Source of the DNA: Perkinsela sp. CCAP 1560/9 | Lineage: Eukaryota > Protista > Euglenozoa: Kinetoplastea | Assembly: GCA_965644495.1 (NCBI GenBank) | Contig: CBFFSA010000012.1 | Span: 310,001 to 374,000 of the forward strand | Direction of reading: 5' to 3' | Length of the DNA stretch: 64,000 nucleotides | Shown here: piece by piece, positions 12,042 to 62,122 of the stretch | Layout of the letters: every line of letters starts with the position of its first letter | How positions within the stretch are numbered: the first letter of the stretch is position 1 | Translations under genes and position numbers: made by a program | The notes under the pieces: model-generated | Databases searched by the model: none | What the model saw: the letters and a program-made list of their open reading frames with translations, nothing else | Told to the model about the DNA's origin: nothing

Positions 12042-13056
12042 GGACGGTAGGGACAAATATTTGACGAAAAATTGATTTTTTTCGTAAATGATTCAAAAGT
12101 CCTTTTAAATGTTTTTATGGCATTTGCAGGTTCATGCACCTATTTTAAGCGTTTAAAAGAGACATCACCGCCCGCCCAGCTACCGTCACCCATCCCAGCC
12201 AAGATCCCCCATCCAGCCACCCGCTCAGCCCCTCGAACTAAATCTCGCTTACTGGGGCCAAATCTCTCTTACGGGACTTACGGTAATAGTGGGCGGTCTA
12301 ACACTCCGAGAAATTCGACCAGTCAGATATCCACGAGGAAGAACAATGATCAGTGATCCACACAGCTGCTCCGAATCCACACAGACCCTCCGAATAGGTC
12401 TGAGGTCTGGGGGACCGACTCGGACCCCCCGCATGGAACCAACTCCCCTACCCGATGTGGTCGTTAAAAAACGTTAAACACGTCGGCAGAAACTGGTAGA
12501 GGCGTTCGGACCTCGCACCCCCAAACGTCTGTGAAGGGCCTATTGTGCCACCCTTGAAGGAGAGTGGCAACTTCCCAAAGGGGGAACATCCTGAGGGAGC
12601 CAGCGGCCAGCCGGGGCGACCCGATGCCCTTCATTCACTCAGAAACGCATTTGCCGTCCTGCGATAGTCAGCTGCGTTTGTCAGGTAAGAAAATGTTGAT
12701 TTCATGTGGATCAAATCGTCGAAACTTCCTTCAGATCGCCGGGAAGAAACAAAGTAACCGATCATTCCCAAGTAATCGTCAGGGGAGCTCAAGCGCCCAC
12801 AAGAACGTCTCGCCGCGCTGACTTATTGCACTCTCGACCAGAGTGTTGGATTTCTGGGTGATCTACCCATGGGAAAAGTTTCGATAGAGTGAATTACTAT
12901 GCCATGTTACTAAAGAAGTGTGGTGCAACAAGTTAATAAAATTATGCGCTCAGAGACGCTGAAAATGGCTGCATGAATACGAAAATGATTTGAAAACGTT
13001 TAAAAAATTATTTCGAAAAAAATCAGTTTTGCGTCAAATATTTGTCCCTACTGCCC
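12042..13056. mobile_element. Non-autonomous Mutator-like element
   Basis: TIRs GGACGGTAGGGACAAATATTTGACG / CGTCAAATATTTGTCCCTACTGCCC. Perfect 9-bp TSD CTAAAACTC at 12033-12041 and 13057-13065. Confidence 0.85.
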
Positions 13057-25581: not shown

Positions 25582-26280
25582 TTGCGGTGGTTGTAAAATT
25601 ACCGCTCTACACTCGATTATTGAAAACAAAGTGAACAAAAACAGTGAAAATATAAAGAGGAACACAGTAATATAATAGAAGAAAAAATATAAAGGGGGGC
25701 CCCGGTGGTCCAAAACTGAAAAAAAGCATCAAAAAAATGGGGGGTCCACGGGGGGGGCATACGTCGCGAAATTTTTTTTCGAATTTTTTGCTTTGCAAAA
25801 TCGAGCGCAGGGAAGTGGTAGAGTAGGCCGCGGCGATAATTTTCCACCCCCCCTGCGGGTACCCCCCCTGGTACGCGCAGGAGGGGTCCGACAAGGTCAA
25901 AATTTCCGAAATTTTTAGGGTGACCAAAAAAAAAAATTTGACGCAAAAAAAAGGAAAAATATTATTTTTCCACAATCGACTCCTAAATCGTATTTTAAGA
26001 GTTTGGGACCTCAGCTACTAATCTACGGCGTTTTTTGCGACAGATTCGACTCCTGCCCCTACTGGGAAGGCATCCAAAACGGCCCAAATTCGGTGTAAAA
26101 TTTCGCAATTTTTGCCGAAAAATCGAGCTTTTACTCCCAAAAAAGTAGATTATTCATCATCTTTTTGCGATTTTCTTTTTTAGGCTCTTCGTTAAACGCG
26201 GTGGTAGTTTTCAACGCGAAGCGCGCAGCATGAGTGACTTCTAAGTTGAAAACAACCACCGCGTTTAACGAAGAGCCTAA
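25582..26280 (+). mobile_element. Full-length palindrome-ended element (subfamily A)
   Basis: Starts TTGCGGTGGTTGTAAAATTACCGC; ends in the 99-bp palindrome 26181-26279; flanked by A and T. Confidence 0.9.
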
Positions 26281-37083: not shown

Positions 37084-38436
37084 ATGTCTCTCATACGCAC
37101 ACTCCTGGCATCAGATACACAATCGACTGTACGTCTAGGTAAGGTTACTGGAGCTTCACTACCAGTGGAATATGATTTAATGCAATTCTTACAAGGCGTA
37201 GAGAATCATCATTCTACCTGGGGTACGAGTACGCCAGCGTGTGAATGGAAACATATCGATTGCGATATATCTGGCAATGTAGTCGATCTGCAGTGGTCGC
37301 ATTTACACCTTCGTGGTGAGCTGAATCTGAAATATTTGCCCGTCATATTGGTGAATCTACAATAAAAATACAGTTTCTGTACCTTGTTGGTACATTTTCC
37401 TAGCTCATCATTTCTCTCCCGGAAACGGGCATATTTTTACTATGTTAATTCCCGTTTCCGGATGGCGCTAGGAGAGGAACTGTCCCTCTTGTCGCAAAGT
37501 AGGGGTGCGCCTCCCTTCCCTCATCTCCCAGCACCCCGCTCGGAACACGGTTCCGAGTCCCCATGCGCTGCAGGACCCTACTACGGGACCACGCGTCGTG
37601 CCTCCACCATCCGGCGACACCGGTACTGCTGCGCGCAGGAGGCTTCCATATACCGGAAGTCTCCTACACGGCGAGCAAACACGTTGTATGCGTGTTCTAG
37701 AGGATGCTCTATGCACCTCTCTTGCTCACCAGCCGTGGCGGATTCTGTGGGACCCCGATGCCCATGATGCATCATGAACCATGACTCCATTTGCCAGCAT
37801 GCATCCATGGCCCTGACCATGTTGTATCATGAACCATGGAAGTTATTTGTAGCATGTACGATGGGAATACCATTCGCGTCCCACAAATCCGTATGTCTTC
37901 CCTGGCAGGACTGCGCTCTCTTCCCGTCTCGGGACATCTTATCCCGATGAAGCCGTTCTTTTCGTTTCCCCAGGAGGATATGCCGTGCTTTTCCCGGTGT
38001 CGTAGAGTGAGGCGACAGGTTCAGCAGGGAGCGCCCTTTGCGTCACCCCTGCTGAGCCCAGTATCTCTACAGGTTTTCGCCCTGTATGAATAAAACCTTT
38101 CATCGTAATGAATTTTCGGGAAATTTTGATTTTGAAGTACTGCCTCCAAGATTAGAAATAATTTCTTTATCTGGCAACCAATTTACGGGCACCCCAAACC
38201 TCTGTAATCTGCCCATGCTAGAATACGCCTCCATCAGTCACAACGAATTTCAAGGTTATATGAACTTTTATTCGCTCCCGCTAACCTTGACCCATTTGTT
38301 TTTGAAATTTAACAGTAAATTGGAAGGTTACTTGAACGTAGGTGGTGTACTGAAGAATTTGTATTACAATGTTGGGGGGACGCGGATTAAAGTGAGTAAT
38401 GGGAGACTAAAACAAGTAATGAGATCATACAAATAA
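37084..38436 (+). pseudogene. LRR family copy 6, interrupted by a 735-bp insertion
   Basis: Removing 37360-38094 restores ...YLPVILVNL|TFHRNEFSG, colinear with copy 4. Confidence 0.88.
37360..38094 (+). mobile_element. SL-RNA-headed insertion element
   Basis: Starts CAATAAAAATACAGTTTCTGTACCTTGTTG|GTAC and ends CTGTATGAATAAA; no TSD; relatives at 49018-49455 (-), 58888-59070, 24766 and 63970. Confidence 0.8.
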
Positions 38437-50534: not shown

Positions 50535-50913
50535 AAGATTTCCACATCGATATATGAGTTTCTATTATTGCGGAGCCTGGAATTGAAAAAAAGAGTGAAT
50601 ACGTCCAGATTGCGGTGGTTGTATAACTACCGCTCTACCCTCGATTATTGAAAAAAAGTCAACAAAAACAGTGAAAATATAAAGAGGAACACAGTAATAT
50701 AAATTTAACAGAGCAAATAATTATTTTTAGTGGCTTCGTTAAACGCGGTGGTTGTTTTGAACTTAGAAGTCACTCATGCTGCGCGCTTCACGCTGAAAAC
50801 TACCTCCGGGGGGTTTCCTACCCCTAGGGGTGGTCTGGACCCCCCATTTTTTTCAATTGTTTTTCAGTTTTGGGCCATATTCTTTTTATTATATTACTGT
50901 ATTCCTCTTTATA

Positions 50914-51649
50914 TTGAGGGAGATACTACTCCCTCGCTACCGTAGGTTAATTCGTCGTGCCCGATTTGTGGCCCGATTTCGTGCCCGATATCGTTTCAGG
51001 TGAGTTTTCGAAAAAAATGTTTACAAAGACGTATGAATCGAACTTAGTGACAAGACCACTAGTTTTTCAACAATTCCGATGGGTTCCCCCTGCCCCCTCC
51101 CCTCCCCACCAGGGTGATCATAGCAATTTCTGAAATTTTGAAAAAAAAACTGAAAATTTATGGGTGAAAGTGAAAAATTATATTTTTCCCGAATCAACTC
51201 CTAGACTGCTTTTTGAGCGTTTGGAGCCTTCTATACCTGTATACGCTTTGGTTTCATTCGATATTTCTCCACCCTGTGCCGGTAATTCACCTATAAAGGC
51301 CAAAATTTACCTGGAAGTGTGTGACACGCAAGGCCGTAGAGGAAGGAGGAGGCGCAAGGCAGAAGGCGTAGCCTTCTGTCTTTTTGCCGCGGCGACGACG
51401 ACTTCCTCGCGTGGGAAGCTGTAAGATTTCCTAGTGGGCATCTTTCGATGGCTATGTAACCCAGGCTAAAGTGGACGAGGGAGATACTAAAGGCACCTTT
51501 GGCAAACTACCACAAAACTGGAACGGTATCTCCCGGTTTGTAGAGCACTCTGATGTGACAAAAGGGTCTTTAACGGGAGATACCGTTCCAGTTTTGTGGT
51601 AGTTTGCCAAAGGTGCCTTTAATATCTCCCTCGTCCACTTTAGCCTGGG
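50914..51649 (+). mobile_element. Divergent palindrome-ended element (family C), nested in a reversed, deleted family A/B copy (50728-50913 plus 51650-51715)
   Basis: 5' hairpin GAGGGAG-ATACTA-CTCCCTC; 78-bp-arm palindrome 51458-51651; host sequence rejoins exactly when it is removed. Confidence 0.85.
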
Positions 51650-51928
51650 TTTTCAATGTTTTTGTTCACTTTTTCAATTATCGAGGGTAGAGCGGTAGTT
51701 ATACAACCACCACAATGTACGTTAAAGTGAAACTTTTCAGTAATTTTTAATTTTAATCCTTGATATGAGTGATGTTTCTAGGATTATTTGCCGTTTGTTT
51801 GCCCATCACCCCTCCTGGGTCATGGGTGGGCATGGTCAAAGTTGGCAAAATTCAAAAAAAAAATTGAACGGGGGTAGAAAATGGAAAAAAAAAGTTTATG
51901 AATTCCTATGTAAATTAATTTACATTTA

Positions 51929-60145: not shown

Positions 60146-62122
60146 GGGCAGTAGGGAAAAATTGCGCTGGTTGTATAACTACCGCTCTACCCTCGATTAT
60201 TGAAAAAAATTGAACAAAAACAGTGAAAATATAAAGAGGAATACAGTAATATAATAGAAGAAAAATTTATAAAAGGGGCTCCGGTGGTTCAAAAATTTTC
60301 AAAAAAAATCGGACCCTTGAGGGGTCCAGGGGAGGGGGGCGTACCGCACGAATTTTTTTTGAAAAAATTACTTTTCGATATAAAAGCGCAGAAAGGGTAG
60401 CCGGGGTCTTGGCGCGCATTTTCCATTCCCCTACCCGGGGGTAGAAAGAGTTTTCGGATTTTTTTTTGGAAAAAATTTCAACTTGACGAAAATAATGGTA
60501 AAAAAAATATTTTTCCAAAAATATTTTTTCGCCTATTGTATTTTGATAGTTTGGGACCTATATTAGCTTTCTACGCCATTGTTTTCGCGACATGTCGCTT
60601 CTTAAAGCCGTGATACGCCTTCCAAAATGACCCACTTTTTACCAAAAAATGCGAAAATGTAATTTTCGGACCCAAAGGTGTCTTTTTGTGTCACAAGAAT
60701 GGTGTGGTTGGAGTCGCATTCTCTACCCAATACGTTTGGTAGCCTCGAATACATGCGTACGAGTGATTTCCCACACGCAAAAGTCGAAATTAGTGCTCTG
60801 AGAGCAAAAATACCCAAATATCACCCCATTTTTACCTAAAAATCGGCTATTTTTCGCTCAAATCCTTCCGTTTTCTTCAGCTTCCCTGGCCAATTTTTCT
60901 TTTTTAGGCTCTTCGTTAAACGCGGTGGTAGTTTTCAACGCGAAGCGCGCAGCATGAATGACTTCTAAGTTGAAAACAACCACCGCGTTTAACGAAGAGC
61001 CTAAAAAAGAAAAATATTTGACGAAAATTTGATTTTTTTCGAAATTGCTCACAATAATTTTTTAAACGTTTTCAAATCATTTTCGTATTCATGCAGCCAT
61101 TTTCAGCGTCTCTGAGCGCATAATTTTATTAACTTGTTGCACCATACTTCTTTAGTAACATGGCATAGTAATTCACTCTATCGAAACTTTTCCCTTGGGT
61201 AGATCACCCAGAAATCCAACACTCTGGTCGAGAGTGCAATAAGTCAGCGCGGCGAGACGTTCTTGTGGGCGCTTGAGCTCCCCTGACGATTACTTGGGAA
61301 TGATCGGTTACTTTGTTTCTTCCCGGCGATCTTAAGGAACATCCCTCTTATAATCTCTCTCTTTCGGGTGCTCGAGAGCAGTTTCGACGCTTTGATCCAC
61401 ATGAAATCAACATTTTCTTACCTGACAAACGCAGATGACTATCGCAGGACGGCAAATGCATTTCTGAGTGAATGAAGGGCACCGGGTCGCCCCGGCTGGC
61501 CGCTGGCTCCCTCAGGATGTTCCCCCTTTGGGAAGTTGCCACCCTCCTTCAAGAGTGACACAATAGGCCCTTCACAGACGTTTGGGGGTGCGAGGTCCGA
61601 ACGCCTCTACCAGTTTCTGCCGACGTGTTTAACGTTGTTTAACGACCACATCGGGTACGGGAGTTGGTTCCGTGCGGGGGGGGGCCGAGTCGGTCCCCCA
61701 GACCTCAGACCTATTCGGAGGGTCTGGGTCCCTAATGTGAGGCCGCCAGGGAAACTGGCATACCCCGGGCTTGGGCGTTTCTTGGATAGCAGCAGCTGTG
61801 TGGATCACTAATCATTGTTCTTCCTTGTGGATAGCTGACTGGTCGAATTTCTCGGAGTGTTACCGTAGACCGCCCACTATTACCGTAGGTCCCGTAAGAG
61901 AGATTTGACCCCAGTAAGCGAGATTTGGTTCGAGGGGCTGAGCGGGTGGCTGGATTGGGGATCGTGGCTGGGATGGGTGACGGTAGCTGGGCGGGCGGTG
62001 ATGTCTCTTTTAAACGCTTGAAATGGGTGTATGAACCTGCAAATGCCATAAAAACATTTAAAAGGACTTGAATCACTTTCGAAAAAAATCAATTTTTCGC
62101 CAAATATTTGTCCCTACCGTCC
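60146..62122. mobile_element. Second, inverted copy of the Mutator-like element; its TIR is interrupted by 60162-61014
   Basis: 61015-62122 matches 12042-13040 in reverse; candidate TSD TACTGGGGG. Confidence 0.8.
60162..61014 (+). mobile_element. Full-length palindrome-ended element (subfamily B)
   Basis: Palindrome 60905-61003 extended by AAAAAGAAAAA; inserted at A|T within a known TIR. Confidence 0.9.

Follow-up and report, generated by a model that had tools for sequence, protein, structure and literature searches.

The sequence at positions 50914-51651 of the window (the whole 64,000-nt stretch of DNA analyzed here) is very probably a non-autonomous rolling-circle transposon of the Helitron2, or HLE2, type, belonging to a family (family C) that shares common ancestry with A/B, an abundant family of the same genome (window 25582-26280 and 60162-61000). 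We tie family C to the Helitron2 system on the basis of the published features that it displays and of its homology with A/B. The first-pass annotation had seen in these sequences an old, functional superfamily of elements; that view is supported, and the superfamily is one that already has a name, the Helitron2/HLE2 rolling-circle transposons.

Anatomy of the family C element

The insertion is non-coding and adds 736 nt, comprising a 734-nt core and two T residues. Its features and the host sequence on either side are listed below by window coordinates.

50834-50913, minus strand: host, a reversed family A element (flank BLAST)
50914-50915, plus strand: TT at the 5' boundary, its sequence being compatible with either element or target
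50916-50935, plus strand: 5' hairpin, stem 50916-50922 with 50929-50935, loop 50923-50928
50916-50928, plus strand: asymmetric terminal inverted repeat of the 5' end, 13 nt long and offset by 2 nt from the element start
50937-50949, plus strand: box CTACCGTAGGTTA, one base past the hairpin; A/B has a box at equal offset
51099-51319, plus strand: internal block taken as homologous to A/B (element positions 186-406), best-kept core ~51170-51260
51458-51535, plus strand: left arm of the 3' palindrome, with the 5' 13-mer direct at 51477-51489 and the inverted core at 51526-51534
51536-51573, plus strand: palindrome loop, 38 nt, in the "flip" orientation in the window copy
51574-51651, plus strand: right arm of the 3' palindrome, with the core in direct orientation at 51575, the terminal inverted repeat of the 3' end at 51620-51632, its tail GT-N7-AGCCTGGG at 51633-51649, then TT at 51650-51651
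51652-51716, minus strand: host, the 5' end of the same reversed family A element that the window copy invaded (flank BLAST, 89-91% to the A 5' ends at window 50609, 32960 and 47362)

The 5' hairpin is a perfect 7-bp stem in which GAGGGAG pairs with CTCCCTC across a 6-nt loop; folded as DNA, it has an energy of -6.7 kcal/mol. The 13-mer forming the 5' inverted repeat begins 2 nt past the first boundary T, or 0 nt from the start if the TT belongs to the host, and both offsets lie in the 0-4 nt range expected of HLE2 elements. About 500 nt separate box CTACCGTAGGTTA from the 3' palindrome. The box pattern CTACCNTNGNTTA occurs eight times in the window against 0.12 expected, and 342 times genome-wide against 26 for a reversed control.

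The 3' palindrome spans ~194 nt in total. As had been described, its arms are 78 nt long and hold the 5' motif; they are 99% complementary, with one mismatch, and as single-stranded DNA the structure folds to -100 kcal/mol. The inverted copy of the 5' 13-mer at 51620-51632 matches at 12 of 13 bases in the window copy and at all 13 in most others. A 9-nt core, GGGAGATAC, is present five times in the window copy (direct at 50918, 51479 and 51575; inverted at 51526 and 51622), and 20 of 23 family C palindromes contain two direct and two inverted cores. With two cores per arm, each arm can also fold back on itself. Beyond the 3' inverted repeat there is no separate small hairpin, the 17-19-nt tail having none of its own. 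An ORF scan of the window copy found nothing longer than 86 aa, and an Rfam scan of it returned no family above threshold.

Both end structures are retained across family C

Searching the 21-Mb assembly with the window element by BLAST identified 121 matching pieces. These include at least nine independent full-length copies, 84-90% identical to the window copy and flanked by different sequence at each locus. All full-length copies carry TT and a 7-bp hairpin, the box CTACCnTnGnTTA, and a palindrome with 78-nt arms that contains the 13-mer in direct and inverted form. Among the nine independent copies, the 5' hairpin is kept at 6-7 of 7 pairs, the 5' 13-mer and its 3' inverted copy are complementary at 12-13 of 13 positions, and the 3' inverted repeat sits 17-19 nt from a 3' end whose tail is conserved throughout. 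An A is found three bases ahead of the hairpin in all nine, within A-TT in eight and A-CT in the other. The proposal that other copies would keep both end structures therefore holds for 9 of 9. Two of the independent copies (L011 and L019) have bodies that differ by ~2%, indicating that family C moved fairly recently.

Some family C copies are internally repeated. At three loci (L025, L020 and L022; contigs C5:630568-632608, C1:2291205-2292321 and C2:935141-936230), element positions ~114-446 are arranged in head-to-tail repeats, with up to four units on C5; these resemble the central tandem repeats of DINE-1/HINE elements. On contig C4 (6416-6500, L047:6416-6500), family C pieces lie in tandem with the same ~11-nt spacer, TT-ATATTTATA, occurring twice, which suggests rolling-circle read-through or local duplication.

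Families C and A/B differ in end sequence but not in end structure

At its 5' end, A/B consists of TT, GCGGTGG, an 8-nt loop, CTACCGC, one base, and then CTACCCTCGATTA or CTACACTCGATTA, the general form of the box being CTAC(C/A)CTCGATTA. Its 3' palindrome contains GCGGTGGT in direct and ACCACCGC in inverted orientation, and the element ends GT-N9-AGCCT followed by a run of A. Paired substitutions had been noted between the hairpin arms of the two families, GAGGGAG/CTCCCTC and GCGGT(G/A)G/CTACCGC, each preceded by TT. All of this is present: pairs 2 and 5 of the stem are altered on both sides, and pair 6 changes from G.T to A-T. In all, 6 of 11 positions of the terminal inverted repeat (leaving 5 of 11 identical) and 3 of 7 hairpin pairs differ between families, yet complementarity is kept at every one, although this between-family covariation represents two lineages only. 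Because the stems differ while their complementarity is intact, structure is conserved where sequence is not, in agreement with the first-pass annotation.

The two families are alike in overall architecture, the CTACC box, the AGCCT tail, the internal block and the insertion signature, and each nests into the other. Their tails were correctly described as motif-GT-N7-9-AGCCT, the spacing being N7 in C and N9 in A/B. The palindrome arms, in contrast, cannot be aligned between families except at AGGCT-N7/9-AC-core; those of A/B are ~45-50 nt long versus 78 nt in C and have, by inspection, one copy of the core each versus two. An autonomous partner was identified for A/B, and none was found for C (see below).

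Candidates for further combinations of ends were examined and set aside. Every apparent hybrid combining the 5' end of A with the 3' end of C is a reversed C element nested inside A, and variant CTACC boxes that might have marked additional end families proved to be mutated C 3' ends. A palindrome scan of ~0.36 Mb detected only A/B-type and C-type Helitron palindromes and no further end family.

The 3' palindrome covaries and has been inverted

We aligned 23 distinct family C palindromes, in which 92.7% of cells are Watson-Crick pairs. RNAalifold reports changes on both sides for 21 of 76 pairs. Our own count is 22 double-changed pairs among 78; 500 column shuffles averaged 8.4 such pairs and never exceeded 15, and sliding the partner column by 1-3 leaves 4-7. 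Several of the double changes, A-T/C-G at columns 46/149 and C-G/T-A at 51/144 among them, are each common to 6-9 of the 23 palindromes and so arose in lineages that kept transposing. We regard this within-family covariation as support rather than proof, since the counts are inflated by sequence relatedness. The 5' hairpin, examined in the same way within family C, displays one-sided decay only, with no compensatory change.

With copies oriented by their bodies, the palindrome loop is in the flip orientation in 15, in the opposite (flop) orientation in 10, and unclear in 1. In the alignment, an asymmetric G.T pair 10 nt into the arms moves together with the loop, which means that the whole hairpin was inverted and not the loop alone. 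The two states cluster on the body tree (3 changes versus 7.4 with shuffled labels), and the tree is compatible with a single origin (p-AU 0.37). From this clustering, inversion is rare and heritable rather than a part of every cycle. Loop orientation is evidently neutral, as both forms went on to multiply. Among A/B palindromes, an inverted loop was seen in none of the 26 whose orientation is readable; one further A/B palindrome is symmetric.

These patterns bear on the possibility, which we judge real but somewhat unlikely, that the complementarity of the ends, and above all of the 78-nt arms, is not selected but is regenerated mechanically, either by fold-back synthesis at a free 3' end during transposition or by arm conversion or template switching, with the compensatory changes as a by-product. 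The arms vary among copies much like the body (pairwise identity 0.88 versus 0.90), yet pairing is as extensive, and double changes are as numerous, as described above. The window copy has its single mismatch in 78 pairs despite a body branch of ~0.057 changes per site. In addition, the right arm of C usually runs 5 nt beyond AGCCT, as GG(G/A)TT, in register with its own left-arm flank, and in two copies (L006 and L024) it reaches 20-30 nt further; the whole hairpin has also been inverted at least once. Templating of this kind cannot, however, explain why the 5' end, which lies ~540 nt upstream of the palindrome, also underwent matched changes, its 13-mer and the short hairpin partner having altered together with both copies in the palindrome. 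Moreover, individual copies carry 1-9 mismatches (mean 5.4 of 78 pairs), close to what plain decay after insertion would produce, and the flip and flop states are clustered on the tree, with inversion rare.

At one locus, on contig C1 (2626700-2627060, L051:1700-2060), a solo C-type palindrome lies between two family A 5' sequences, one forward and one reversed, and is in effect lengthened by these inverted A fragments. The adjoining A/B palindrome (L051:1565-1741) is similarly lengthened, to 179 nt.

The internal block points to common ancestry with A/B

A profile built from nine C copies was searched against A/B copies with nhmmer, E values being given for a 1-Mb search space. Every one of the 12 full-length A/B copies was matched, with strand and order preserved (E 6.7e-8 to 2.7e-15), with C positions 186-406 (~220 nt) collinear with A positions 269-509. 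Local alignment of the C and A/B bodies gave z = 10 against dinucleotide shuffles. The body alignment proposed earlier, of 51125-51310 with 25900-26090, is therefore significant. The best-kept block is ~75 nt long and roughly 70% identical, as judged by eye on the alignment. Families C and A/B are therefore homologous: besides this block, they have in common the CTACC box, a tail of the form GT...AGCCT and the insertion signature.

Only ~220 of the 736 nt align with A/B, and sequence capture and shuffling are well known in Helitrons. Family C might on these grounds be a recent chimera, in which an A/B-derived internal block sits between unrelated ends whose architecture converged on the needs of the Rep-helicase. 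We consider this improbable, as the resemblance extends to the ends themselves: in both families the CTACC box stands one base past the hairpin, AC precedes and GT follows the core in both arms, AGCCT is followed by purines at the tail, and the A-TT insertion signature is identical.

Rep-helicases of the genome and candidate partners of family C

The Pfam domain Helitron_like_N has 17 matches in the genome, which fall into three lineages. Lineage 1 encodes an intact ORF of 2975 aa with DUF6570, Helitron_like_N and PIF1 domains (Pfam). It resides in a 12.9-kb element on contig C8 (151113-163970) that has an A/B 5' end on one side and, on the other, the 3' palindrome of A/B. A second copy, on contig C4, is 99.5% identical and also has A/B ends, and both of its flanks are unlike those of the C8 locus. 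As A/B ends bound the element at two loci with different flanks, the lineage 1 element has transposed and is the autonomous partner of A/B. Identity is 24% between lineage 1 and either lineage 2 or lineage 3, and ~50% between the latter two. In none of the three lineages, including the 2975-aa ORF of lineage 1, did Pfam detect Exo_endo_phos or another endonuclease domain.

Just ahead of the 2975-aa ORF, in the 5' region of the autonomous element (C8:151113-152783, L041:3113-4783), lie two partial B-like units. They cover B positions 160-779 and 39-808, and both are truncated within the 3' palindrome. Such truncated units may be a way of tolerating read-through past internal terminators.

No Rep-helicase bounded by C-type ends was found among the three lineages, with part of the genome scanned for end pairs. 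Two candidate partners were rejected. In lineage 2 (contig C2:930982-), the gap between the ORF and a C palindrome is filled by an unrelated 304-bp repeat also found at seven or more other loci, and the whole arrangement is a 99% segmental duplication. In lineage 3 (contig C1:2627985-2633867), the nearby palindrome is a solo one, ~1 kb away and between inverted family A fragments. A search for inverted words shared by the regions upstream and downstream of the lineage 2 and 3 ORFs revealed nothing convincing. Further solo C-type palindromes occur at C1:2211930, C9:430113, C6:800453, C18:45641, C5:806900, C6:425496 and C2:1103537. Family C is mobilized either by a partner elsewhere in the genome or by lineage 1, through cross-mobilization via the shared boxes and shape.

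In the lineage 2 region, the 304-bp repeat (C2:934840-935143, L022:1200-1503) is 95-96% identical to its copies at at least seven other loci; it adds ~100 codons to the apparent Rep-helicase ORF, up to the C palindrome, and so gives the false appearance of an ORF that ends in the terminus. The lineage 2 Rep-helicase element is split by a ~1.4-kb repeat with internal inverted repeats (L049:2954-4352), present at dozens of loci at 94-99%, and by a second insert of ~390 bp (L049:4396-4783). Directly upstream of the lineage 2 Rep-helicase region is a ~2-kb array of a 27-bp tandem repeat (C2:925001-927000, L049:1-2000).

Insertion occurs at A-TT without loss of host bases

Nested and paralogous copies supplied empty sites for comparison. 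Family A contexts lacking the insertion read CTTTATA-TTTT-CA in 19 of 19 distinct paralogs, and the window reads CTTTATA-TT-core-TTTT-CA. A second family C copy, L007, reads ...GTTTA-TT-core-TT-AAC, and two paralogous empty sites (window 61120-61135 and ~12930-12945) read ...TTTTA-TT-AAC. Empty sites carry one TT where filled sites carry two. A family B copy within a family C element, compared with many uninterrupted C copies, again corresponds to core plus TT at A-TT; in total, this pattern is seen with two empty sites for family C and two for A/B. Insertion of family C thus adds the 734-nt core and two T residues (736 nt) at A-TT, and no host bases are lost. It had been reported that removing the element restores the host CTTTATA^TTTTCA (the caret marks a junction). 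This is correct when 736 nt are removed, leaving the four T residues found in the 19 paralogs; it fails for the 738 nt originally delimited, with TT on each side.

The filled-site sequence is the same whether insertion occurs as A^TT, AT^T or ATT^ or with duplication of TT. There are, however, A/B copies with A-TT on the 5' side and TA at the 3' flank (window 26273 and the autonomous copy on contig C4). These argue against strict target duplication, and they would be best fitted by an element that starts with TT and inserted between A and T. For the insertion site generally, the simplest reading would be A^T(T), with an element that starts with TT and ends in a CTRR-like tail (CTGG, CTAA). Such a junction and end would be nearer to canonical Helitrons than to the T^T rule given for HLE2.

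Three family C copies (window 50914-51651, L003:1501-2230 and L015:1501-2196) lie in reverse orientation within the AT-rich first 100 nt of family A elements, and two of the three abut the identical A position. This AT-rich segment of family A seems to be a preferred A-TT target.

That family C is instead a cut-and-paste foldback or MITE-like element with a 2-bp TT target duplication and a superficial likeness to Helitron2 is highly improbable: the doubled TT of filled sites and copy L004, in which the 5' flank is CT and the 3' junction can be parsed as ...CCTGG-CT, would suit it, but its inverted repeat is placed asymmetrically (2 nt in at the 5' end versus 17-19 nt in at the 3' end, with the 3' tail kept in all copies), the homologous A/B ends bound a Rep-helicase element, the A/B copies with TA at the 3' flank lack a strict duplication, and a non-exhaustive search saw no DDE transposase linked to these ends.

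Comparison with known rolling-circle elements

Canonical Helitrons (HLE1) start with 5'-TC, have no 5' hairpin, carry a 16-20-nt palindrome ~11 nt from a CTRR end, and insert at A^T. Family C resembles them in its presumed connection to a rolling-circle Rep-helicase and in the probable absence of target duplication; its junction is read most parsimoniously as A^T, and the CTGG and CTAA tails fit CTRR. It differs in starting with TT rather than TC, in possessing a 5' hairpin and terminal inverted repeats, in a palindrome that is far larger and reaches the end, and in the DUF6570 domain of the Rep-helicase (of the A/B lineage). Single-strand transposition of the IS200/IS605 kind, also considered, was dropped once Rep-helicase elements with sister ends appeared.

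The agreement with Helitron2 is more extensive. By definition, these elements carry a 5' inverted repeat that begins 0-2 nt into the element and pairs with downstream bases as a 5' hairpin, together with a subterminal 3' inverted repeat 20-30 nt from the end (PMC3627910). Family C shares with them (e.g., Helitron-1N1_CRe and Helitron-1N1/1N2_CQu) the 5' inverted repeat 0-2 nt in and its hairpin, a 3' inverted repeat in subterminal position (~20 nt from the end), and a 3' hairpin. Typical Helitron2 elements also lack target duplication (the one-ended Chlamydomonas elements CRe-1, 2 and 3 are the exception) and insert beside T residues, and their Rep-helicase has no endonuclease domain, as is the case for that of the sister family A/B. 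Compensatory mutations between two related Helitron2 families were described by Bao & Jurka (2013, PMC3627910), and comparable changes separate C from A/B. Three differences stand out: in Helitron2 a small hairpin follows the 3' inverted repeat, whereas in C the repeat lies inside the ~194-nt palindrome; this palindrome also contains the 5' end in direct orientation and, further in, another pair of 9-nt cores; and the host of C is a kinetoplastid-like protist.

Further similarities are found with the Helentron-derived HINEs, which have subterminal repeats 2-4 nt from the 5' end, boundary T residues and TT insertion (Thomas et al. 2014, PMC4067079). Like animal HINE and DINE-1 elements, family C is non-coding, with inverted repeats corresponding to their 12-15-bp subterminal ones, a short inverted repeat whose 5' partner is nested in the 5' repeat, a 3' palindrome, boundary T residues at a TT target and, in some copies, internal tandem repeats. 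The boundary T residues belong to Helentron-type elements and vary in number (PMC4067079). HINE palindromes, in contrast, measure 5-10 bp and lie 8-35 bp from the end, and autonomous Helentrons carry an endonuclease domain, which Pfam did not detect in any of the three Rep-helicase lineages. In the HELIANO study (PMC11417382), DUF6570 was a marker of the HLE2 clade, to which both Helitron2 and Helentron belong.

Compensatory conservation of structure is thus already known for Helitron2, and the gain here is incremental, family C being new within that kind. What is unusual in family C is the enlarged 3' palindrome, which embeds the terminal repeat, covaries and has been inverted at least once. 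The placement of the 3' inverted repeat inside a giant palindrome, the within-family covariation and the occurrence of the loop in both orientations all go beyond these two published descriptions of Helitron2 and HINEs (PMC3627910, PMC4067079).

A model for the recognition of family C ends

For Helitron2, it has been proposed that pairing of the two inverted repeats opens the 5' hairpin and sets the end point of replication (PMC3627910). The steps that follow derive from this published model; the position of the nick, the roles of the motifs and the Rep-helicase that would move C are our own extrapolations. The Rep-helicase would nick the top strand at the A-TT junction ahead of the 5' hairpin, unwind and displace the strand 5' to 3', and halt at the point of folding of the 3' palindrome, where the two terminal inverted repeats pair with each other. 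A joined, circular or tandem form would then present an 11-13-bp stem and a ~19-22-nt loop holding AGCCT...TT and the joint. When the ends are joined in silico and folded, the 3' and 5' inverted repeats pair across the joint in both families, and the joint lies in the loop beside AGCCT...TT. The stems would be read as shape, and so be free to vary provided that both partners vary, and the short boxes (the AGCCT tail and CTACCnTnGnTTA) would probably be read as sequence.

We speculate further, on a scenario that we hold unlikely as a whole, that the lineage 1 Rep-helicase reads shape together with two short boxes, one in the junction loop (AGCCT...TT) and one past the 5' hairpin (CTACCnTnGnTTA), and could thereby mobilize both A/B and C despite their unrelated stems. 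The C palindrome, with its nested cores, covarying arms and invertible hairpin, would act like a viral inverted terminal repeat, copied by hairpin-templated synthesis in the course of rolling-circle transposition.

Significance for the host lineage and for Helitron2 biology

At window 37371-37394, the host genome has a sequence that resembles the 3' part of a kinetoplastid spliced leader and is followed by GT. A survey of 57 trypanosomatid genomes found no DNA transposons and dismissed earlier Helitron calls there as false positives (PMC12278014). Family C, together with A/B and lineage 1, adds to the evidence that a relative of the trypanosomes carries active rolling-circle DNA transposons. 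The two families constitute a natural experiment on how Helitron2-type transposases read their ends, with the same architecture and boxes, an intact Rep-helicase in the genome, and unrelated stems. The giant 3' palindrome, which embeds the terminal repeat, covaries and occasionally inverts, provides a handle on whether such hairpins serve only as stop signals or are themselves copied.
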